Virus record (IMG/VR): IMGVR_UViG_3300030041_000009
Coordinates: 1-64,000 of that record
Length of the DNA: 64,000 nt
Reading direction: 5' to 3' (one strand)
The translations under genes and the position numbers were made by a program. Each line of letters starts with the position of its first letter. Within the stretch, counting starts at the first letter, position 1. A model generated the notes under the pieces. The model ran no database searches, was not told the origin of the DNA, and was given only the letters and a program-made list of their open reading frames with translations. Positions 8,729 through 48,492 of the stretch are shown one piece after another.

Positions 8729-9388
8729 ATGAGTAGAATTAATAAATTTGATGAGTTTGTAAATGAGTATAATTATAAATTTGATGATTCAGAATTTTAT
8801 GATTCAGAATTTGATGACCCTGAATTCTATGACCCTGATTATGATGACTCTGTATTTGATGACCCAACAATGGGTGGTTTAAGTATTGATACTTTACAAA
8901 TTGCCGCAGATAAATATAAAACAAAAGAAGAATTTATTAAAAATGATCCAAGAGCTTATGATATTGCTCTTAAAAGTAATTTATTAGATTACTTATTCAA
9001 TAAACAATCTAAACAAGTGCCAAAAGGATATTGGACAGAAGAAAACCTTCAAAAAGAAGCTGATAAATATGAATTACGAAATGATTTCAAAGATAATAAT
9101 GCTTCAGCATATAATATTGCTTGTGATAAAGACATATTAGATAAATTGTTTAACGATCATGAGAATCAAGGATATGCGGAAAAACATAATCCTAATAAAG
9201 TTTTTACGAAAAAACAATTACAAAATATAGTAAATAAATATAAAACACGAAGAGAATTTCAAAAAAATGATTCAGAAGCATATTCTAATGCTGTTAGAAA
9301 TAGTTTACTAGATGAATTGTTCAAAGATAAACCAAACCAAGGATATAAAGGAAATCAAAGACAAAATAATAAAAATGACATCAGATGA
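8729..9388 (+). CDS. CTS-like leader, acidic repeats and three HEG-type helical repeats; no nuclease domain
   Basis: MSRINKFDEFVNE; (D)DSEFY repeats; WTEENLQKEADKY repeats like those in 14449-15747. Confidence 0.7.
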   Translation: MSRINKFDEFVNEYNYKFDDSEFYDSEFDDPEFYDPDYDDSVFDDPTMGGLSIDTLQIAADKYKTKEEFIKNDPRAYDIALKSNLLDYLFNKQSKQVPKGYWTEENLQKEADKYELRNDFKDNNASAYNIACDKDILDKLFNDHENQGYAEKHNPNKVFTKKQLQNIVNKYKTRREFQKNDSEAYSNAVRNSLLDELFKDKPNQGYKGNQRQNNKNDIR

Positions 9389-13236: not shown

Positions 13237-13500
13237 TTATATCATTTCATATGTTTTTTGATACATATGTTCAATTTTATTAAGTTCTAATATATCATAA
13301 ATATCATCAGTTTCCATAGATATAAATGAAGTATCATCTTCATTTAATAATGATAATAATTTTTCAAATTTTATTTTGAAAAAATCACGAGTTTTTTCAT
13401 TAACATCTAAGACATCCCAATAAAAATCCCAAGTATCATTAGTTTTAACTAATGCAGAACAACAAAATTCAAATTCTTTTTTTAATTCTTTTTTATTCAT
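13237..13500 (-). CDS. Hypothetical protein (possible immunity partner of 13497-13958)
   Basis: Acidic 87 aa ORF overlapping the upstream stop. Confidence 0.5.
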   Translation of the reverse strand: MNKKELKKEFEFCCSALVKTNDTWDFYWDVLDVNEKTRDFFKIKFEKLLSLLNEDDTSFISMETDDIYDILELNKIEHMYQKTYEMI

Positions 13501-13958
13501 ATTTTTGTTTTTAATTCTATTATATTTTTTACATCAATAGTTTTTTGACCTGGTAATATTGTTATTATATTAATATTCAAATTATTAGAAATATTAACAA
13601 TTATAGTAAAATTATATTCTGAAAACCATAATGAGTATTTTCCATTATTCTTAATATAATCATAATTATTAATAAATAATTCATCTAATCCTTTACTAAT
13701 TAATGTATTTAATTCTGTTATATTTTTTAACGAAGTTCTTTCTTTAAATCTTTTTATTAAATCATGCTTAATTGTGTGATTCCAATTTATATTCAACCTA
13801 ATCTTTTTATTATCTATTCTTTTAGAGATAGTTTTATTTTTTATAAAATTATCTGTATTAATAATTTCTTGATCACTAAAAGTGACTCCAGTACCTTTAA
13901 TTATAGATATATCTGATAATCTTGCTTCATTAAATAATTTAAAATTTAATATCCTCAA
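13497..13958 (-). CDS. CTS-like leader plus possible BECR/RelE-like RNase fold
   Basis: MRILNFKLFNE; HDLIKRFKER...IITIL pattern. Confidence 0.35.
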   Translation of the reverse strand: MRILNFKLFNEARLSDISIIKGTGVTFSDQEIINTDNFIKNKTISKRIDNKKIRLNINWNHTIKHDLIKRFKERTSLKNITELNTLISKGLDELFINNYDYIKNNGKYSLWFSEYNFTIIVNISNNLNINIITILPGQKTIDVKNIIELKTKI

Positions 13959-13979: not shown

Positions 13980-14138
13980 TTATTTTTTTATTTTACTAAT
14001 TATTATTTTCTCAATATATTCAGAATAATTCTCAATCCCATTATCCTCACAATATTTTTGCCAAAGTTCATACACTTCAGGATCAATAGATACTGATAAC
14101 TTTTTTCTTTTCTTATCTTCTGGCACAGTCTTTCTCAT
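13980..14138 (-). CDS. Ribbon-helix-helix (CopG-like) protein, not in the ORF track
   Basis: MRKTVPEDKKRKKLSVSIDPEVYELWQKYCEDNGIENYSEYIEKII. Confidence 0.7.
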   Translation of the reverse strand: MRKTVPEDKKRKKLSVSIDPEVYELWQKYCEDNGIENYSEYIEKIIISKIKK

Positions 14139-14269
14139 GACATATATAATAAAATTATTTTAAAATGTTTTATTTTTATTAAACTTTTTCTTAATAATTA
14201 ACTACAATTATTATAAAATTGTCAAAAAATGATTTTTGTATATTAATATATACAATAAAAATAATAATT

Positions 14270-14452
14270 ATGAGAAGAAAAATAGAAAAAAAGAAAATGA
14301 CATTTTCAATATCATTTGATCCAGATATATTAAATACTGTAAATAATACAATAGCAAATAGATCAAAATATATACAAAATATTATGATAGATGAAATGTG
14401 CAAAAATTATGAAATAAAAGAAGAACTAAAAAATAAACATATTATATTATGA
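14270..14452 (+). CDS. Ribbon-helix-helix protein
   Basis: KKMTFSISFDPDIL...NRSKYIQNIM. Confidence 0.7.
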   Translation: MRRKIEKKKMTFSISFDPDILNTVNNTIANRSKYIQNIMIDEMCKNYEIKEELKNKHIIL

Positions 14453-15747
14453 AGTGGACTAAGGAAATGTTGCAGGAAGAAGCAAACAAATATACAAATA
14501 GAATGGAATTTAGAGAAAATAGCAAAGCGGCTTACAGATATTCATATAGAAATCATATAATGAATGAATTATTCGAAAAACATATAAATAAAGGATATAT
14601 TATAACATGGACTAAAAAAAAATTAAAATATACCAACAAGCAGTTACAAGAAGAGGCTAATAAGTATTTTACTCGTGGAGAATTTATTAAAAATAATAAA
14701 CCTGCGTATCAATATTCATGTAGCAAAAATATGATAGATGATTTGTTTAAAAATCATAAAAATAATGGATATTATATAAAATGGACTGATGAAAAATTAC
14801 AAGAAGAGTCTAATAAATATTGTACTAGATGTGAATTTCAACAAAAATCGAATGGTGCATATTTATCTGCAGTTAGAAGAAATCTGATGGATGATTTATT
14901 TAAAAATCATAATAATAATGGATATTCAGATAAATACTCTAAAAATTATATTTATTTTGTTTATGTTTATGAATTGATAGATTATAATAAAGCTTATATT
15001 GGATTGACTATTAATATTGATAGAAGAGACAAAGAGCACGTATTTGATCAAAATGAAAAATTAAATAAATTTTGTAAAGAATCTAATATTTCATATCCAA
15101 AATATAAAATATTAGATTCTAATTTAAATTCAATAGATGCTAAAGAAGCTGAAATATTTTGGATTGATTATTATAAACAAAATAATTGGAAATTATTTAA
15201 TATTGCGAAAGGAGGTTCTTTAGGTGGCAAACCTTTTAAATGGACCGAAAATAAATTAATAAAATACGTTAAAAAATATAAAACTAGAGGAGATTTTTGT
15301 AATGATAACGAATCTGCATATAATTCTGCAAATAGATTAAAAATAATGGACAAATTATTCGAAAATCATATAAATAGTGGTTATACTAATAGACAAGTTA
15401 AAGAAGGATATTGGACGAAAGAAAAAATACAAGAAGAAGCTAACAAATATAATACTATAATGCAATTTAGAAAAGAATGTAGTAAAGCATATCATGCGGC
15501 AAGTAATTTAAAAATAATTGATGAATTATTTAAAAATCATATTAATCAAGGCAGGACAGCAAAGCATAAATATTATTGGACAACAGAAAGATTACAAGAA
15601 GAAGCTAACAAATATAAAACAAGAAATGATTTTAGAAAAAATGATATAAACTCTTATAGTTATTCTAAAACTAAAAAAATATTAAATGAATTATTTAAAA
15701 ATCATATAAATCAAGGATATATTCAAAAACAAAAAAAGTCAGAATAA
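14449..15747 (+). CDS. GIY-YIG homing endonuclease flanked by six helical repeats
   Basis: VYVY...YIGLT...RRDKEH...E...N; WTxEKLQEEANKY repeats on both sides. Confidence 0.8.
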   Translation: MKWTKEMLQEEANKYTNRMEFRENSKAAYRYSYRNHIMNELFEKHINKGYIITWTKKKLKYTNKQLQEEANKYFTRGEFIKNNKPAYQYSCSKNMIDDLFKNHKNNGYYIKWTDEKLQEESNKYCTRCEFQQKSNGAYLSAVRRNLMDDLFKNHNNNGYSDKYSKNYIYFVYVYELIDYNKAYIGLTINIDRRDKEHVFDQNEKLNKFCKESNISYPKYKILDSNLNSIDAKEAEIFWIDYYKQNNWKLFNIAKGGSLGGKPFKWTENKLIKYVKKYKTRGDFCNDNESAYNSANRLKIMDKLFENHINSGYTNRQVKEGYWTKEKIQEEANKYNTIMQFRKECSKAYHAASNLKIIDELFKNHINQGRTAKHKYYWTTERLQEEANKYKTRNDFRKNDINSYSYSKTKKILNELFKNHINQGYIQKQKKSE

Positions 15748-15783
15748 TTATTCTGACTTTTTGTTTTTGAATTATTTTAAAAA

Positions 15784-17655
15784 TTAGTGAACTTCTTCGA
15801 AATCCACGTCATTTATGTTTTCAGATTCATCTTTATTAGTTGATGTACTTTCATTAGTTGATTGATTATTATTCTCTTCGTAAAGCTTAGAACTTATATT
15901 TTGCCAAGTATCATTCAATTCTTTACTATATTTATCAATATCATCCAGATTTTGAGTTTTGTGAGCTTCTTTAAGATTATCAAGCTTAGAATTCAATTCA
16001 GTTTTATTTGATTCATTCAATTTATCGCCATATTCTTCAATTTGTTTTTCAGTTTGAAAAATCATAGCATCTGCTTGATTAAGTTTATCAATCTTTTCTT
16101 TTTCTTTTTTATCTGATTCCGCATTTTGCTCAGCTTCCATCTTCATTTTTTCAATTTCTTCTTTTGTTAAAGATGATTTACCTTCTATTCTAATATCATT
16201 AGATTTACCAGTTGCTTTATCAACTGCTTTAACTGTCAAAATTGAATTGCTATCTAAACTGAATGTAATTTCAATCTGTGGTGTGCCTCTACGAGCAGGT
16301 GGAACATCAAGTGAAAATGTGCCTAAATGTTTATTGTTTTTGTATAGAGGTCTATCTCCAGTACAAACATTTACCTGTACGCTTGGTTGTGAATCTGATG
16401 CTGTACTAAATACTTGACTCTTAGATGTCGGGATCGTAGTATTTGCGGGAATCATGATAGTAGCAATTTCACCCATTGTCTCAATAGAAAAGTTCAACGC
16501 TGTTACATCAAGTAATAATATATCTGTATTATCTCCATTTAATACAGAACCTTGAATAGCGGCTCCAGATGCAATTGCAGTATCAGCATTTAGAGATTTA
16601 TTTGCTTTTTTACCAAAGTATTTTTCAATACTTTCTACCAAATAAGGTATCCTGGTGCTACCCCCCACTAAAATTATATCATCAAATTGTGAAATTTGTT
16701 TGTTACTTTTCTTAAGTGATGACATAATTAATTTCATTGTTTTATCAACATAAAATTGAATTAATTGCTCAAATTTAGCACGAGTAATAATTTTATTTAA
16801 ATGTCGTGGTTGTCCATCTACCGCCGTGATGTACGGTAAGTTGATTTCAGTTTGTGTTACACTAGATAATTCTATTTTTGCTTTTTCTGCGGATTCAGTA
16901 ATACGTTGTAGTGCCATTGAATCTTTACGAATATCTACACCAGTTTCTTTTAAAAATTCTTCAGAAACATAATCAACAATTGCATCATCAATCAAATTTC
17001 CGCCTAAATCTAAATTACCGTCTGTTGATAGTACTTCATATAAACCATCTGATACCGTAATTGCTGAGCTATCCGTTGTACAACCACCAGCATCTATGAC
17101 CATATATAGTTTATCTGTCTTATCTTTAATATTTAATGCTGCTGCTGTTGGCTCTGAAATAATTCTATCTACTTGAAACCCAGCTATTTCACCTGCTACC
17201 TTAGTGCAACTTCTTTCATCCGAATTGAAATAAGCTGGAGTCGTTATAATTACCGAGTCTATTTTACAAGATAGATAATCTTCTGCTGTTTTTTTCATTT
17301 TTTGAAGAATCATTGCTGAAATTTCTTCTGGCGAATATACTCTATCACCAATTTTTACTGCTGCCTTACCATTATTATCAACTATATCATAAGGACGTTT
17401 TAGATGTTTAACTTCATCATATGTTCTACCAATAAGTCGTTTAATATTAAAAATGGTATTTTTAGGATTTAATGCTGCTTGGCGTTTAGCAGACTCTCCA
17501 ACTTTAATTTCTCCTGTTTTTTGATCAAATGCTACGATAGAAGGAGTTGTTAAATTTCCTTCTGCGTTTGGTATAACAACTGCTACACCTCCCTCAATGA
17601 TGCTTACTACCGAATTGTATGATCCAAGATCTACTCCAATAATTTTTTTACTCAT
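15784..17655 (-). CDS. dnaK: Hsp70 chaperone DnaK (divergent)
   Basis: GVDLGSYNS, TPSIVAF, TTPAYFN, EPTAAA, LVGGSTRIP, PQIEITF, C-terminal DVDFEEV. Confidence 0.95.
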   Translation of the reverse strand: MSKKIIGVDLGSYNSVVSIIEGGVAVVIPNAEGNLTTPSIVAFDQKTGEIKVGESAKRQAALNPKNTIFNIKRLIGRTYDEVKHLKRPYDIVDNNGKAAVKIGDRVYSPEEISAMILQKMKKTAEDYLSCKIDSVIITTPAYFNSDERSCTKVAGEIAGFQVDRIISEPTAAALNIKDKTDKLYMVIDAGGCTTDSSAITVSDGLYEVLSTDGNLDLGGNLIDDAIVDYVSEEFLKETGVDIRKDSMALQRITESAEKAKIELSSVTQTEINLPYITAVDGQPRHLNKIITRAKFEQLIQFYVDKTMKLIMSSLKKSNKQISQFDDIILVGGSTRIPYLVESIEKYFGKKANKSLNADTAIASGAAIQGSVLNGDNTDILLLDVTALNFSIETMGEIATIMIPANTTIPTSKSQVFSTASDSQPSVQVNVCTGDRPLYKNNKHLGTFSLDVPPARRGTPQIEITFSLDSNSILTVKAVDKATGKSNDIRIEGKSSLTKEEIEKMKMEAEQNAESDKKEKEKIDKLNQADAMIFQTEKQIEEYGDKLNESNKTELNSKLDNLKEAHKTQNLDDIDKYSKELNDTWQNISSKLYEENNNQSTNESTSTNKDESENINDVDFEEVH

Positions 17656-34276: not shown

Positions 34277-34774
34277 TTATTTTTTCTTTGATAGTAAAGA
34301 TGTTATATCATTAATAAATTTCTCAGAATTTTTTGGATTCATATTTTCAATTATAGTAAAATTTTGATTCCCTTTAATTTTTATTCCTTCTGTAATTTTT
34401 CTTAATTCAGGTTTTGTTGAATAATATTTTAATAAAGTATTGACGAATTCATTAATATTCATTTTTAATTTTTCATTATATTTAACAATATGTAATTGAT
34501 TATCTTTTTTTCTAATAAAGTAATCAGTATCTGAATATTTATTTTTTATAGTTTCTAATATATCAGTTATATGTCCGCTATTAAATTTTATAATTTTTTC
34601 CTCTAATATTTCAATACTCAACATAGAGTCATCTTTAGGAGCTAGTAAAACTTCTTCTTTTATAGGTTTAATAACCTTTTCAATAGTTTCATCTACTGCA
34701 TTATTTGATGAAATATTATCAGATTCTATTTTTGTATCAATTATATTAAAATCTGTATATTTTTTAATAGGCAT
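34277..34774 (-). CDS. Hypothetical protein, paralogue of 48550-48936
   Basis: Shared LxxxKYN...YY...KIxGNxxFxII. Confidence 0.65.
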   Translation of the reverse strand: MPIKKYTDFNIIDTKIESDNISSNNAVDETIEKVIKPIKEEVLLAPKDDSMLSIEILEEKIIKFNSGHITDILETIKNKYSDTDYFIRKKDNQLHIVKYNEKLKMNINEFVNTLLKYYSTKPELRKITEGIKIKGNQNFTIIENMNPKNSEKFINDITSLLSKKK

Positions 34775-34904
34775 ATTATATTGTTATTTTTTATTATATA
34801 TTAATAAATTAAAGTCATTTTTATTTTTTATTGAATAAAAGTTAATTATATAAAAAAAGATTATTACTTTATAGTAATAATCTTTTTTTGTGTTAAATAA
34901 TTAA

Positions 34905-43707: not shown

Positions 43708-45309
43708 TTATTTTTTTAAAGTATATATAAATTTTAAAAATCCAGAATCATATATGCGATATACCTTCCGTTCTAACATAATTTCATGCTCTGTTTTATT
43801 TATATCAAATCCTTCTGTTACTAATTTATTTTTACGAAAATTACATTTATTATGCCTAATATTATCAATAATATATTGATAATCTGGCTTAACTTTATCG
43901 ACAAAATCAAATCCTATTTTTTTATATAAATTAATTTGACTAAAACTTCTATCAAAATAACATACTATTTCTTTCGCACTATATTTATTTATAAAATAAT
44001 TTAATAACGTAATTTCACTATCAATAATATTAGTATTTATTTTATTACTAAAACTTATCATCTCATAATTATTATTCTTAATATTAAATGTCATTAAACT
44101 AATTAATTCATTACCTAAATATAAACCAATTTTTATATTAGATTTAATATATCCATGTATATCATTTTTTTCTAAATAACTTTTAATTAAATTTATATCT
44201 AAAACTTCTCTTATTTCACAATCTTTTGAATCAATTACGTTTTCAAAAATATTTAATTTACTTAATATTATAGATTTTATAATTTCATTATTATAAATCC
44301 AGTCATCTTCATAAATATGAATCAATTGAATGCCTTGTTTTTCACATTCTTCAGTTTTATTTAAATGATAATCTTTATCTTTATTTAATTCATTGTGCCA
44401 CCATAAACCATTAAATTCAAATGCTAATTTCAAATTAGGTAAATAAATATCTAATTCTAAAGGATTTAAAATTTTTCTATCATTCAAAATTATCTCATCA
44501 TTATAATTTTCTTTAATAAAACCTAATAATTGTAACTCTAACCCACTAACATTTTTTGAAATTGGATTGCATTCTGTACATAATATTGTTTTATTATTTA
44601 TCCTATTCCACAATAATTTATAATCAATATTAAAATGATGATCTTTATGTAAATCACATTTAAATTCATATTGACCATTTGATAAATATCCAACAAATAT
44701 ATCTTTTCTATCTCTAATAATTTCAGATTTATATAATCCTTTATCAAAATTTTTCTTAAAACTAATAAATTGATTTTCTCTCATTTTAATAGATATTTCT
44801 GCATTTTGACTAGCATATTCTACTCCATATCTTTCTAAATTCGTTGATTTCATTTTATATGGATTTGTATAGTTAGCATCTCCATATTTTTCTAATTTAC
44901 TTACATGTCCTTTTTTGTTAATTTCTTTAGATTGCTGAGGATATTCGACACCAAAATTTTTTAAACAAGTTTCTACTTTTTTATCTTTAATAATTTGAGA
45001 ATTTGAAACATTTTCTACTCCATATTTTTCTAAATTTGTATTTTTTGATTTTTGTTCAGAACATTTTCTACTACAAGCATAATATGTTGTTGAATTTTTT
45101 GTGTTATAATTATATCTACTATATGAAATAATAGTTTCTTCGCCACAAACATCACATTTTGCTTTAATTTTTGATACACTTCTTGTAGGTAAATCTATTG
45201 CAAGTATAGAAATAATTTCATTTCCTCCTTTTACTTCATACCCTTTTTCTTTATAATATTTAATTTGATTATTAGATATTTTTACATCGACATACTTTGT
45301 CAAAATCAT
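43708..45309 (-). CDS. Hef-like homing endonuclease (Vsr/PD-(D/E)xK type)
   Basis: CDVCG, KYGV repeats, ELDIYLP...AFEFNGLWWH...IHIYEDDW. Confidence 0.75.
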   Translation of the reverse strand: MILTKYVDVKISNNQIKYYKEKGYEVKGGNEIISILAIDLPTRSVSKIKAKCDVCGEETIISYSRYNYNTKNSTTYYACSRKCSEQKSKNTNLEKYGVENVSNSQIIKDKKVETCLKNFGVEYPQQSKEINKKGHVSKLEKYGDANYTNPYKMKSTNLERYGVEYASQNAEISIKMRENQFISFKKNFDKGLYKSEIIRDRKDIFVGYLSNGQYEFKCDLHKDHHFNIDYKLLWNRINNKTILCTECNPISKNVSGLELQLLGFIKENYNDEIILNDRKILNPLELDIYLPNLKLAFEFNGLWWHNELNKDKDYHLNKTEECEKQGIQLIHIYEDDWIYNNEIIKSIILSKLNIFENVIDSKDCEIREVLDINLIKSYLEKNDIHGYIKSNIKIGLYLGNELISLMTFNIKNNNYEMISFSNKINTNIIDSEITLLNYFINKYSAKEIVCYFDRSFSQINLYKKIGFDFVDKVKPDYQYIIDNIRHNKCNFRKNKLVTEGFDINKTEHEIMLERKVYRIYDSGFLKFIYTLKK

Positions 45310-45371: not shown

Positions 45372-46856
45372 TCATAAAGGAGTTCCCTCTAATTTTTTAA
45401 GCTCATTTTGTAATTTATCAAGTTCTTCATGTTTTTCCATCATCACGTTTTTCCACTTTTTTCTATCAGAATATACTTCTCTCATTACACTACTAACAAC
45501 TCCTTCCTCATTCTTAAATACTGATCCATTTAAAGTTATGATATCATCAGGCTCAATTGTTAATTGATGTCCATTAAATATGGAATAATCTTTACCTTTT
45601 ACTTTTTGACCTTTATATGAATCTGCAGATATGTTAAATTCTCTCATAGTAGTAGGATACAAGGAACTAAAGTCAAAACAGCATGTCCATTCTGCCATAC
45701 CTCTTACAGGTTCTTTAACCCATCCTCCTTTTATAGATTCAGTTTCAGTATCTCCGTATTCACTATCTTCATTTCTAACAAGAACAATATTTTTTTGATC
45801 TCTTAATTTTTCTCTTAAAATTCCTTCTGTTAATGCAAGAGTTGAAATTGCATCTTTAATCTTAATTTTACCCAATACAGCCATGCCATAAAGTATGTCT
45901 ACATATTTCATTTTTTTATGTATCTGTTGAACTAAGCAACTATCTACAGCATTATAGAATACAAATTTCTTATAGTCCTCTTTATGCAATTTTTTTAAAT
46001 CTCCATCGTAATTAATTTTCTTAATTTCTTTTCCTAGTAATTTTTCAGAAGCGAAATCTAAAGATAAACTTTCCTTTACTTTAACTGATTGATCCCATTT
46101 TTTAAATAATTCCATATAATCAACTATAACCCTATGCGCTGGCATTTCTGCGTAACTTGGATTAATAGCATTAGGAGGATTAAATGGTTTATTAAGTTTT
46201 TTTGTGAATGAGGCAACCTCAGGTTCAAGTCCAATTCTTCTTGCTCTTGCAACTAAATATGTCCAGTCATAATTAATGAAATTCCAACCAGTTATTACTG
46301 GCATTTTAGGAACTAATTTGTTAAAAAAACTATGAAGCATATCATATTCAGTTTTGTACTGAACATATTTAAATTTATAATTTGTTCCAAATTTTTGAAA
46401 ATGAGTATTGATATCATTACCAATTGATTCAATTTGTGCAGCATCTAAAAACTGAGTTCCAATTACCAACACTTTATCTTTATTTACTATTGATATTGTT
46501 TGTATCTCACCCTCAGCAAGTTGTGGTTGTGGTTTACCAGTATTAAGAATCTCGTTCTCAATATCAACGAAGAATATATCTGGTTCTGCATATGAATATA
46601 TTTCATCTCGTTCTTCTTTATCAAAACTATCTATGAAATCATAAATGGAATACCGATTTGGGTATTTTGTATAAATCTCTTTAACATTTTCTCCTGACCA
46701 TGTGACAAATCTACCACTTTTTTCTTTATCATCATCAGTAGTTTTTATAAATTTTGTTGGGCGACTCCAATTTTTATATTTTAGTTTGATCTGACCAGAA
46801 CTATCTATATATGAGATAATTAGGTTATTATTTTTATATTCAGTATCTACAATCAT
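45372..46856 (-). CDS. Family B DNA polymerase, N-terminal subunit only (exonuclease plus motif A)
   Basis: VDIE (ExoI), GWNFINYD (ExoII), YNAVD (ExoIII), GGWV, DFSSLYP; motifs B and C absent. Confidence 0.9.
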   Translation of the reverse strand: MIVDTEYKNNNLIISYIDSSGQIKLKYKNWSRPTKFIKTTDDDKEKSGRFVTWSGENVKEIYTKYPNRYSIYDFIDSFDKEERDEIYSYAEPDIFFVDIENEILNTGKPQPQLAEGEIQTISIVNKDKVLVIGTQFLDAAQIESIGNDINTHFQKFGTNYKFKYVQYKTEYDMLHSFFNKLVPKMPVITGWNFINYDWTYLVARARRIGLEPEVASFTKKLNKPFNPPNAINPSYAEMPAHRVIVDYMELFKKWDQSVKVKESLSLDFASEKLLGKEIKKINYDGDLKKLHKEDYKKFVFYNAVDSCLVQQIHKKMKYVDILYGMAVLGKIKIKDAISTLALTEGILREKLRDQKNIVLVRNEDSEYGDTETESIKGGWVKEPVRGMAEWTCCFDFSSLYPTTMREFNISADSYKGQKVKGKDYSIFNGHQLTIEPDDIITLNGSVFKNEEGVVSSVMREVYSDRKKWKNVMMEKHEELDKLQNELKKLEGTPL

Positions 46857-47005
46857 ATATTATTTTTTAATTTATTTTTTAATAAAGTTTCAATGAATTT
46901 TGATTTAGATTTTTTAATATATTTATCTAATAATTCATAAATATATGGATTTAGTGAAAAACTCACTGTAATTTTTTTTTCACTATCTAACATTTTTTTC
47001 TTCAT
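46853..47005 (-). CDS. Ribbon-helix-helix protein, not in the ORF track
   Basis: MKKKMLDSEKKITVSFSLNPYIYELLDKYIKKSKSKFIETLL. Confidence 0.65.
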   Translation of the reverse strand: MKKKMLDSEKKITVSFSLNPYIYELLDKYIKKSKSKFIETLLKNKLKNNI

Positions 47006-47110
47006 ATAATTTATATATGTTTTTATATTATTTGTTTGTTATTTTATAAATAAGATATATTCTTGTGTTATGACTTGAAATTATTTATATATAGAATAAA
47101 AATAAAAGTT

Positions 47111-47275
47111 ATGAAAAAAGTTGAAGAAAAAAAGAGGAAAATAACAATAACATTAAGTCCTGACATACTTATATTATTAGATGATAAAACATCTAATAGA
47201 TCTAATTATGTAGATAATTTATTATTAGAATATTTTAATAAATTAGGAGAAGATGTATCAAAAATAAAATTATAA
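47111..47275 (+). CDS. Ribbon-helix-helix protein
   Basis: KRKITITLSPDIL...NRSNYVDNLL. Confidence 0.7.
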   Translation: MKKVEEKKRKITITLSPDILILLDDKTSNRSNYVDNLLLEYFNKLGEDVSKIKL

Positions 47276-47277
47276 TA

Positions 47278-48492
47278 ATGAGAAAATTAACTACAAATGA
47301 ATTTATAGAAAAATCAAATGAGATACATAATAATAGATATGATTATTCAAATACTATTTATACTGGTTGTAAAAATGATGTCGAAATAATTTGTTCAATA
47401 CACGGAAAATTTACTCAAAATGCTCAATCTCATTTAAATGGGCATGAATGTACGAAATGTTCTGGTCATTATATATATTCTAAAATAGAATTTATTGAAA
47501 AAGCTAATATTGTACATAATAAATATGACTATAGTTTAACGAATTATATAAATAGTAGAAATAAGATTAAAATAATATGTCCGATTCACGGAGAATTTAT
47601 CATAAGGGCGAATAATCATTTACTTGGAATAGGATGTTCAAAATGTAGTGGAAAAAATAAAAATATATCTGAAATAATTGATGATTTTAATAAAATATAT
47701 GATTATAAATATGATTATAGTTTAGTTAATAATTATAAAGATAAACATTCTATAATTAAAATAATATGTCCAATTCACGGAGAATTCGAAAAAATTGCAT
47801 ATGCTCATAACAATGGTCACGGATGTCCAAAATGCGGCATAAATACATTATCTACTTCTAAATTTATAGAATTATCAAAATTAAATCATAATAATAAATA
47901 TGATTATAGTTTAGTTAAATATAATGGTGTTATGAATACTGTAAAAATAATATGTCCAATACATGGTATGTTTGAACAGATTAGTAGATTTCATTTAAAT
48001 GGTAGTGATTGTCCAAACTGTTCAGAATCTAAAGGTGAAAAAGAAATCAGAAATTATTTAGATAATAATAATATAACTGAGAATGAATTTAATAAATTAT
48101 TTAAAAAATATTATAAACAATGTTACATATATGATGCTTCTATAATGTTAGATAAATTTAATTTAAAAAATTTTAGTAGATTAAATTCTAATAATTTGGT
48201 TATATTTTTTAATGTTTTAAATGATAAAAAGAATTTATTGAAAATACATCAAAAAAGTGGAAAATTTAAAAAATTTTTATTAGATATTTATGATGTGTTA
48301 ACTAACCGTTATTTTAATGATTATTATTATAAAAAAATAGATAAGAGTATTAAAATAGAAAATTTGGATAATATATTAGAAATTTATGATAAAAGATTTA
48401 AGAATGCATCAAAAACTATTAAAAATAAGTTATCTAAATTATATAGTTTAATATTAGATGAATTAAAACATGAAAATTTAATAAAAAATTAA
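47278..48492 (+). CDS. Chimera: four C[PS]IHG zinc repeats (HEG type) fused to a metallopeptidase C-terminal domain
   Basis: C[PS]IHG..F...H..G..CxxC four times, SKGE, then about 140 aa matching the end of 49934-50866. Confidence 0.75.
   Translation: MRKLTTNEFIEKSNEIHNNRYDYSNTIYTGCKNDVEIICSIHGKFTQNAQSHLNGHECTKCSGHYIYSKIEFIEKANIVHNKYDYSLTNYINSRNKIKIICPIHGEFIIRANNHLLGIGCSKCSGKNKNISEIIDDFNKIYDYKYDYSLVNNYKDKHSIIKIICPIHGEFEKIAYAHNNGHGCPKCGINTLSTSKFIELSKLNHNNKYDYSLVKYNGVMNTVKIICPIHGMFEQISRFHLNGSDCPNCSESKGEKEIRNYLDNNNITENEFNKLFKKYYKQCYIYDASIMLDKFNLKNFSRLNSNNLVIFFNVLNDKKNLLKIHQKSGKFKKFLLDIYDVLTNRYFNDYYYKKIDKSIKIENLDNILEIYDKRFKNASKTIKNKLSKLYSLILDELKHENLIKN

Follow-up and report, generated by a model that had tools for sequence, protein, structure and literature searches.

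Divergent ribbon-helix-helix gene pairs, putatively two repressors, coupled to homing endonuclease-type genes in a huge, AT-rich phage genome

The window analyzed here comprises positions 1 to 64,000 of IMG/VR record IMGVR_UViG_3300030041_000009, a 256-kb fragment of a huge phage whose DNA is only 22% GC. Two loci in the window, 13980–15747 and 46853–48492, share one layout. A minus-strand ribbon-helix-helix (RHH) gene faces, across a short control region, a plus-strand RHH gene, and the stop codon of the latter overlaps or abuts a nuclease-type gene. The features are as follows.

13980–14138, minus strand: module 1 reverse RHH, 52 aa, first gene of the leftward transcription unit (the next ORF is 13497–13958).
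14139–14269: module 1 control region of 131 bp between the two RHH start codons, with a rightward promoter composed of a −35-like ATGATT (14229–14234), ATATATA (14246–14252) and a −10 TACAAT (14251–14256); imperfect 11-bp-phased repeats lie upstream of the −35, and a weaker leftward promoter-like element lies near 14139–14185.
14270–14452, plus strand: module 1 forward RHH, 60 aa, clade A, with a C-terminal helix and conserved tail; the ATG at 14270 is the most likely start.
14449–15747, plus strand: GIY-YIG homing-endonuclease-like gene, 432 aa, apparently intact, overlapping the RHH stop by ATGA; the catalytic core (14920–15252) is flanked by about six 45-aa repeats.
15733–15762: bidirectional terminator-like hairpin with a 13-bp stem, closing module 1 and shared with the convergent Hsp70/DnaK gene (15784–17655).
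45372–46856, minus strand: N-terminal fragment of a family-B DNA polymerase (PolB), 494 aa, coupled by ATGA to the module 2 reverse RHH.
46853–47005, minus strand: module 2 reverse RHH, 50 aa, leader gene of the polymerase transcription unit.
47006–47110: module 2 control region of 105 bp between the two RHH start codons, with a rightward promoter composed of ATGACT (47070–47075), a 16-nt spacer and TAGAAT (47092–47097); a short palindrome-like element lies just upstream of the −35.
47111–47275, plus strand: module 2 forward RHH, 54 aa, clade B; an identical protein is found on 21 public contigs.
47278–48492, plus strand: zinc-repeat gene derived from a homing endonuclease gene (HEG), 404 aa, with four DUF723-type repeats.

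The initial annotation had described this layout as a recurring module, and that observation is confirmed; the ORFs lie where it placed them. When the RHH proteins were searched against all 2063 stop-to-stop ORFs of the genome, the two forward proteins matched each other at E 2e-7 to 5e-7 and the two reverse proteins at 2e-4 to 5e-4. The forward motifs noted earlier, PDIL and NRSxY, are present. The same search found a third divergent pair outside the window, at genome positions 120943–121418, whose nuclease gene is frameshifted; the reverse protein of module 1 is 65% identical to its paralogue there. Two single-RHH cassettes were also found in the genome. In one, an RHH (RHH_3, E 1.3e-5) is ATGA-coupled to a GIY-YIG/NUMOD3 gene at 183123–184138. 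In the other, an RHH-like ORF lies next to the same promoter type and a DUF7487 nuclease at 107084–108246. At least five pairs occur in one 330-kb relative. Chance ORFs in AT-rich DNA were considered and rejected, as the family comprises 656 clusters. An alternative genetic code was also rejected because the frames are open under table 11, as was the idea that the RHH is a frameshifted N-terminal domain of the nuclease, since the same RHH precedes unrelated enzymes.

The reverse family is assigned to the RHH superfamily by sequence. Its profile matches the RHH domains of NikR (best E 5e-4), ArtA, HicB and CopG in the PDB, and members hit Pfam RHH_3 at 5e-7 and RHH_1 at 4e-6. The assignment of the forward family is weaker. 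It cross-hits the reverse family at 1e-5 to 1e-7, but its best PDB sequence hit is an RHH antitoxin at E 0.11. An AF2 model of the forward protein (pLDDT 76) has an extended stretch at residues 10–17, followed by helices at 18–27, 31–43 and 47–55. About 30 of its top 50 structural neighbours in an exhaustive alignment are RHH proteins (omega, CopA, PutA, Arc, NikR and ParD), though Z is at most 4, and a Foldseek search of the model against the PDB found no match. A homodimer prediction, bearing on the obligate dimer of RHH proteins in which a two-stranded antiparallel sheet reads the major groove, gave no verdict and is not used as evidence either way.

The nuclease-type genes differ in kind and in condition. 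For the 432-aa protein, a whole-protein Pfam scan missed GIY-YIG, whereas a scan of the core alone found PF01541 at 24.1 bits (cut-off 22.6; E 4.5e-5). The protein matches phrog_20046 at 2.5e-62, and the Tyr, Gly, Arg, His and Glu columns of the family alignment are invariant. The module 2 gene, which the initial annotation took to be a zinc-repeat HEG, matches DUF723, phrog_681 and phrog_559 but has no nuclease core. Its homology to intact relatives stops at 48075, where the C-terminal PD-(D/E)XK-like catalytic core, with the conserved acidic/Lys-type motif block seen in relatives, is lost (48075/48076) and replaced by an unrelated 139-aa tail. An alignment with relatives and a tblastn search in all frames both show that the core is missing. 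In contrast, a population variant, public contig L050, is 100% identical over 46700–48075 and then continues with an intact 354-aa enzyme. The adjoining polymerase gene is identified by Pfam DNA_pol_B_exo1 and DNA_pol_B and by phrog_2062. The reverse RHH is translationally coupled to the polymerase gene here and in five other phages (contigs L001, L022, L023, L025 and L045).

The initial annotation had set as a refuting condition that the small ORFs not be RHH folds or show no linkage to nucleases elsewhere. Linkage was examined in 32 distinct contexts from public phage contigs, where the gene after the forward RHH was GIY-YIG (5), zinc-repeat plus PD-(D/E)XK-like (16), DUF7487 types (4), HNH (3), other HEG types (2), TnpB (1) or a methyltransferase (1). 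Thus, 31 of 32 payloads are nuclease-type, spanning at least seven unrelated architectures. The layout is a recurring, portable unit rather than a coincidence, and it is tightly linked to nuclease genes elsewhere. The gap between the forward RHH and its payload is mostly −4 to +4 bp, and the reverse RHH is divergent at 80–165 bp in 30 of the 32 contexts.

The control region was analyzed comparatively, because a generic promoter scan is uninformative in such AT-rich DNA (28 and 32 sites found against 22 and 26 expected). For terminator-like hairpins, 3 sites were found against 0.2 expected. In an alignment of 24 modules the rightward, sigma-70-like promoter is conserved in all, with an invariant ATATATA and a near-invariant TTGACT. 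The promoter motif occurs only 5 times in the 256 kb, against 0–1 in shuffled sequence. The 27–36 nt upstream of the −35 repeat at a lag of 11 (z = 8.1 across modules), and the repeated 5–7-mers differ between modules. These repeats are putative operators, and the proposal rests on the relatives: a repeat finder run on the window's own three control regions returned only weak AT-rich inverted repeats, which cannot be told from background. Nor could the repeats be assigned to one RHH by co-variation, since both proteins co-vary with them.

The modules are intergenic and lie beside conserved genes, next to the Hsp70, PolB and helicase genes and the genes at 85770 and 140347, and are present in some relatives and absent in this genome or in others. 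Sites next to the genes at 85770 and 140347 that are filled in relatives are empty here, and more distant relatives lack the pair upstream of PolB. The payload class changes at least 8 times on the 22-tip RHH-pair tree, and sister modules carry different nuclease classes at different genomic sites.

We suggest that each module is a portable, self-regulated expression cassette for a free-standing homing endonuclease, a reading to which we give a probability of about 0.6. In this view, a near-consensus sigma-70-type promoter (TTGACT, 16 nt, TAnAAT, with the ATATATA) would fire rightward to make one short mRNA encoding the forward RHH and then the nuclease. Because the nuclease start overlaps or abuts the RHH stop, the nuclease would be made only by re-initiation and in lower amount than the RHH. 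The forward RHH, as a dimer or higher oligomer, would bind the two or three module-specific repeats, which sit one helical turn apart and abut the −35 box, and so shut its own promoter, limiting the nuclease to a brief, low pulse. The reverse RHH, as first gene of the divergent transcript, would autoregulate, and possibly cross-regulate, the leftward promoter feeding the neighbouring phage genes, such as the polymerase fragment in module 2. The RHH pair with its control region would be the conserved chassis, behind which nuclease genes are exchanged or decay.

The analysis itself establishes the gene order, the assignment to the RHH fold by sequence, which is weaker for the forward family, the coupling, the conserved promoter and phased repeats, the linkage to nucleases, the multiple copies per genome and the patchy presence among relatives. 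DNA binding, repression, which RHH binds which site, and mobility by homing, with site-specific cleavage of the element-less allele and unidirectional inheritance, are inferred; repression is inferred from fold, position and analogy only. A site abutting the −35 box could serve activation rather than repression. In addition, the RHH pair stays intact where the nuclease is dead (modules 2 and 3 and contigs L011 and L009), so the pair may serve the phage rather than the nuclease.

The initial interpretation is therefore partly supported. Its portable two-repressor switch controlling toxic nucleases fits the RHH assignment, the recurrence and the nuclease linkage, and its suggestion that the module 2 reverse RHH could regulate the polymerase is in keeping with the coupling, but repression is inferred. 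Its alternative, a new class of selfish element, goes too far, as the payloads are ordinary free-standing HEGs.

A bolder extension, which we regard as doubtful, is that the RHH pair and its bidirectional control region form a universal docking chassis for selfish nucleases in huge phages, letting unrelated classes be swapped in and out. Its outward-facing promoter and reverse RHH would have taken over transcription of essential neighbours such as the polymerase gene. The phage could not then delete the cassette without silencing an essential gene, which amounts to addiction by promoter capture. This would explain why intact RHH pairs outlive their dead nucleases.

Of the rival explanations, the one that survives best, although unlikely, is that the RHH pair is a resident regulatory switch of the phage, supplying divergent early promoters for operons such as that of the polymerase. 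Homing endonucleases would then be squatters, inserting or being swapped in behind the forward RHH because that spot offers a promoter and translational coupling. The tight coupling of the reverse RHH to PolB in six phages with 54–76% PolB identity, the survival of the pair where the nuclease is truncated or frameshifted, and the different nuclease classes following closely related pairs at the same site next to the helicase gene all agree with it. However, no pair without a nuclease-type or methyltransferase payload was seen in the 32 contexts. The pairs also occupy at least six different genomic neighbourhoods and are absent from those sites in close relatives, and more distant relatives lack them at PolB. 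The pair therefore moves too. Pairs at the same site are not monophyletic.

Much less likely is a toxin–antitoxin-like arrangement, in which the forward RHH would neutralize the nuclease by direct binding, as the RHH antitoxins ParD, CcdA and RelB do, besides autoregulating. The gene order, the ATGA overlap and the RHH N-terminal domain are typical of type II systems, the best PDB sequence hits include RHH antitoxins, and the forward family has a conserved C-terminal helix and tail beyond the RHH core. But one forward-RHH clade precedes at least four unrelated nuclease architectures, rather than one cognate toxin family, and a single tail of 15–20 residues, much shorter than typical toxin-binding domains, is unlikely to inhibit all of them. 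Part of the tail's conservation can be explained by the overlapping start region of the next gene. Least likely is that the RHHs serve homing itself, for example by masking the element's own copy of the target site (self-immunity) or helping to position the nuclease: free-standing HEGs must avoid cutting their own genome and the RHHs, by fold, would bind DNA, but no direct evidence supports the idea, the phased repeats lie exactly at a conserved promoter rather than in the flanking conserved genes where such HEGs usually cut, and the same chassis precedes TnpB and a methyltransferase, which have other targeting modes.

How free-standing HEGs avoid harming their carrier is known mainly from T4, through self-repression by I-TevI, RNA hairpins and coupling. 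A dedicated, transferable two-repressor chassis shared by GIY-YIG, HNH, PD-(D/E)XK-like and even TnpB nucleases would be a general solution to that problem, and would tie phage HEGs to the recently shown Arc control of IS605. It would also offer simple experimental handles, i.e., repressors of about 50 aa, control regions of about 100 bp and natural operator variants, which could serve for orthogonal gene control. The design also bears on how selfish elements become entangled with essential genes in megaphage genomes.

The cassettes can be compared with four known systems. In restriction–modification systems, controller (C) proteins are likewise small DNA-binding regulators encoded just upstream of, and co-transcribed with, a dangerous nuclease whose expression they time. 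C proteins are helix-turn-helix proteins, however. A distant member of the present family, on contig L043, flanks a methyltransferase-like gene and an unassigned ORF, with no restriction partner identified.

The T4 homing endonucleases (I-TevI and the seg/mob genes) follow the same logic. They are kept scarce by repression at their own promoter, by translational coupling to the upstream gene and by promoter choice, and promoters for neighbouring essential genes carried by the element favour its retention. In T4, the nuclease itself is the repressor (I-TevI), or RNA hairpins do the job, and no dedicated trans-acting repressor gene is described. T4 HEG promoters are middle or late, whereas the promoter here looks like a strong host-type (early) promoter.

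RHH control of a selfish nuclease is already known from IS605-family transposons, where the tiny Arc protein binds a bidirectional promoter region and represses the divergent promoters of tnpB and tnpA (Moon et al., bioRxiv 2026, doi 10.64898/2026.09.24.754181). These authors note in passing that Arc homologues are also adjacent to HEGs, and one module found here (contig L062) has the forward RHH followed by a TnpB-like gene. IS605 elements carry one Arc, whereas here two paralogous RHHs lie back to back in free-standing HEG cassettes of phage genomes with no transposase.

The closest architecture is that of the phage P22 immunity I region, in which mnt faces arc-ant. There too, two small RHH repressors are transcribed divergently from a short shared control region, and one of them, Arc, is the first gene of an operon whose second gene is the potentially harmful payload. 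In such a switch the operators overlap the promoters and are bound by the two repressors with distinct specificities. The region behaves as an insertable "moron" and varies among related phages. The payload of P22 is an antirepressor (Ant), whereas the payloads here are nuclease-type, the putative operators are phased direct or inverted repeats upstream of the −35, and the phages are huge, apparently lytic-type, with several cassettes per genome. Similarity to Arc and Mnt is at superfamily level only (phrog Arc-like hits at E 0.005–0.01). Thus, the resemblance is architectural, and the cassettes are not members of immI but are built like it, with a nuclease in place of the antirepressor.

The window is the first 64 kb of a single 256,033-bp contig with 22% GC, and CheckV estimates the virus record at 36% complete. 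Its family-B DNA polymerase fragment is most similar to those of 460–735-kb uncultured "huge" phages, with 55% identity to LR756501/3. No tRNA genes were found, and all frames discussed are open under table 11. The initial annotation recorded that a divergent RHH pair, followed by a coupled nuclease gene, occurs twice in the window. That observation holds, and it can be extended. The features of the two modules and their neighbors are as follows.

13980-14138 (-): reverse RHH gene of module 1.
14270-14452: forward RHH gene of module 1, after a 131-bp spacer; the internal ATG is preferred to the upstream TTG because it matches the N-termini of the family.
14449-15747: 432-aa gene overlapping the stop of the forward RHH gene by ATGA.
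15733-15762: bidirectional terminator-like hairpin shared by the module 1 nuclease gene and the convergent Hsp70 gene.
15784-17655 (-): full-length Hsp70/DnaK homologue (Pfam HSP70, E 2e-192).
43708-45309 (-): 533-aa homing endonuclease (DUF7487; phrog_3339 at 4e-90).
45372-46856 (-): 494-aa N-terminal fragment of a family-B DNA polymerase.
46853-47005 (-): reverse RHH gene of module 2, the stop of which overlaps the start of the polymerase fragment by ATGA.
47111-47275: forward RHH gene of module 2, after a 105-bp spacer.
47278-48492: 404-aa zinc-repeat gene of module 2.

When every stop-to-stop ORF of the genome was searched with the four small proteins, each partner was recovered, with forward–forward matches at 2e-7 to 5e-7 and reverse–reverse matches at 2e-4 to 5e-4. 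The search also revealed a third divergent pair at genome 120943-121418, with a GIY-YIG gene behind its forward RHH gene. Thus, the recurrence is not chance. Downstream of the third reverse RHH gene, at genome 121730-123900 (locus L002), lies a tandem array of at least seven paralogous genes of ~90–115 aa, mostly overlapping by a few codons and sharing a conserved C-terminal motif. Similar arrays follow reverse RHH genes in relatives, the related loci being L033 and L065. As for the polymerase, the fragment is followed immediately by the DUF7487 homing endonuclease, and no C-terminal polymerase half was found in the 256-kb contig with Pfam DNA_pol_B, for which the only hit is 45408-45800. Relatives also have a fragment of ~500 aa, so the polymerase appears to be a split gene in this clade.

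The assignment of the small proteins to the RHH fold rests on several comparisons. A profile of 22 reverse-type proteins hits the RHH domains of NikR (E 5e-4), ArtA, HicB3, and CopG among solved structures, and individual members hit Pfam RHH_3 (5e-7), RHH_1 (4e-6), RepB-RCR_reg, and CcdA. The forward type obtained no Pfam or PHROG assignment, but it is homologous to the reverse type, with cross-hits of 1e-5 to 1e-7. Its best solved relative is an RHH antitoxin, aligned over the strand and the NRS turn at E 0.11. The AlphaFold2 model of the forward protein (pLDDT 76) has an extended N-terminal segment followed by helices. An exhaustive structural comparison with this model lists mostly RHH proteins (omega, CopA, PutA, Arc, NikR, ParD, MazE, and VapB), although only at Z up to 4, as expected for 60 residues; Foldseek found nothing. 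We take both families as RHH, the forward one with somewhat less certainty.

The core of the 432-aa protein, 14920-15252, passes the GIY-YIG threshold of Pfam and is flanked by repeats of about 45 residues. A 219-aa ORF at 8729-9388 (+) consists of an acidic N-terminus plus three copies of this repeat (phmmer E 1e-38 to a relative's HEG). It has no nuclease core and no Pfam hit, and it may be a HEG-derived DNA-binding remnant or a domesticated protein. The 404-aa protein of module 2 has four DUF723-type zinc modules but lacks the C-terminal PD-(D/E)XK-like core present in all its relatives, and that core is not present in any other frame either. A public contig, L050, is 100% identical to the window from 46700 to 48075 and then diverges, encoding an intact 354-aa enzyme followed by a second HEG and different downstream genes. 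It follows that the window genome carries a recombinant in which the catalytic domain was replaced, with a sharp breakpoint at 48075/48076. The 404-aa form also occurs on other contigs (L051), and both variants circulate in public metagenomes. This fits reports that nuclease genes mark boundaries of genetic exchange between phages. The GIY-YIG gene of the third copy is frameshifted near genome position 120400. To summarize, one of the three paired nucleases looks intact, whereas all six RHH genes do.

Scans of IMG/VR with the forward and reverse alignments returned 47 loci, to which look-ups by identity and searches of five larger records added more. After removal of duplicates, 32 distinct forward-RHH contexts were examined. 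The gene directly downstream, mostly at -4 to +4 bp, was GIY-YIG in 5 contexts, zinc-repeat plus PD-(D/E)XK-like in 16, DUF7487 plus PD-(D/E)XK-like in 3, a DUF7487 N-terminal domain plus HNH in 1, a type homologous to the gene at 84801 of the present genome in 1, HNH in 3, NUMOD3 plus DUF559-like in 1, a TnpB-like protein in 1, and a methyltransferase-like gene in 1. The gene behind the forward RHH was thus nuclease-type in 31 of 32 contexts, but these 32 are a fraction of several hundred family contexts and come mostly from one group of AT-rich phages, so the figure counts related lineages rather than independent events. The reverse RHH lay divergently at 80–165 bp in 30 of the 32. In a distant member, locus L043 (5001-6742), the two RHH genes are not divergent neighbors but flank a convergent pair, namely, a 178-aa ORF with no family hit and a methyltransferase-like gene with weak N6_Mtase and RrnaAD hits. 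This may be a restriction-modification system under RHH rather than helix-turn-helix control. A word-index protein search found 656 clusters of the forward family, essentially all metagenomic and unnamed, and one 330-kb contig holds at least five pairs.

In the present genome, 5 of the 8 HEG-like genes that we recognized are RHH-associated. Three belong to the pairs, and the other two, outside the window, are single-RHH variants of the cassette (loci L073 and L074). At genome 183123-184138, an RHH_3 gene is ATGA-coupled to a canonical GIY-YIG/NUMOD3 endonuclease, behind the same promoter type and a terminator. At genome 107084-108246, an RHH-like ORF faces a DUF7487 nuclease that directly follows the same promoter type without a forward RHH.

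Alignment of the 75 nt upstream of 24 forward RHH genes shows a strikingly conserved promoter-like element: TTGACT, a 16-nt spacer, and TAnAAT, with ATATATA invariant in all 24, the distant methyltransferase-linked and HNH-linked modules included. The motif occurs only five times in the 256-kb genome, against 0–1 in shuffles. Its strict version also occurs at window 34795-34818 (-) and genome 72046-72069 (-), upstream of two ordinary-looking genes (34277-34774 and 71404-72021, respectively), and may therefore be a rare strong promoter class of the phage rather than one exclusive to the cassettes. Immediately upstream, and abutting the -35 box, are two or three copies of an A-tract plus a 5–7-nt word, which is the same within a module but differs between modules. 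Over all modules, the match at lag 11 is 0.54 against 0.38 expected (z = 8.1), and no other lag stands out. Clades A and C of the pairs have direct repeats, whereas the polymerase-linked clade B tends to have inverted repeats. RHH oligomers such as omega, MetJ, CopG, or Arc read DNA through phased short repeats on one face of the helix, and we therefore read these repeats as putative operators, although in the window's own copies they are imperfect and cannot be called alone. The leftward side carries a weaker, less conserved promoter-like element.

A maximum-likelihood tree of the concatenated pair has three well-supported clades, and payload class changes at least eight times on its 22 tips. 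Several sister modules differ in both nuclease class and site. Module 1, with GIY-YIG beside Hsp70, is sister to a module with a different nuclease at another site (90/91 support), and a DUF7487 module is sister to a GIY-YIG module (91/91). At the site upstream of the helicase gene, related pairs carry either GIY-YIG or a zinc-repeat enzyme. Sites that are filled in relatives, next to homologues of the genes at 85770 and 140347, hold either a bare HEG or other genes here, and relatives whose polymerase is 37–43% identical have no pair upstream of it. Thus, the pair and the nuclease behave as a mobile, recombining unit, with the nuclease as the more replaceable part.

The best-supported reading is a self-regulated HEG cassette. 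In this view, translational coupling would keep the nuclease below the level of the RHH, and RHH binding at the -35 would give a short pulse from an otherwise strong promoter. The reverse RHH would head the transcript of the polymerase fragment, as the gene order in six phages suggests, and the cassette would therefore have become part of the expression signal of an essential gene. The gene layout, its recurrence, its linkage to nuclease genes, and the conserved upstream sequence were observed directly, whereas DNA binding, repression, transcription, and homing are inferred. The proposal of the initial annotation, that the module is a portable two-repressor switch controlling toxic nucleases or else a new class of selfish element, is supported in part.

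Of the alternatives, the one that survives best is that the pair is a resident phage switch behind which HEGs squat. The persistence of pairs with dead nucleases and the tight PolB coupling speak for this reading, but the patchy, multi-site distribution of the pairs themselves speaks against it. An antitoxin-like role, in which the RHH is a protein inhibitor of the nuclease, is unlikely because one RHH clade serves unrelated nucleases and has only a short tail. No evidence supports a role in target-site masking, and the repeats lie at the promoter.

Neither RHH control of selfish nucleases nor the immI-like architecture is new in itself; what is described here is a variant of these in which the architecture would serve homing endonucleases, and it should be of real interest to workers on homing endonucleases and huge phages. 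The proposed cassette is built like P22 immI, in which Mnt faces Arc-Ant and Arc limits expression of the gene behind it. The T4 literature shows why such control is useful: HEG expression is held down by autorepression, hairpins, and coupling, and promoters for neighboring essential genes that come to lie in the element favor its retention. A 2026 preprint shows that an RHH protein, Arc, represses the divergent promoters of IS605 elements that encode the TnpB nuclease, and it remarks that Arc homologues also sit next to homing endonucleases. One of the modules examined here indeed carries a TnpB-like gene.
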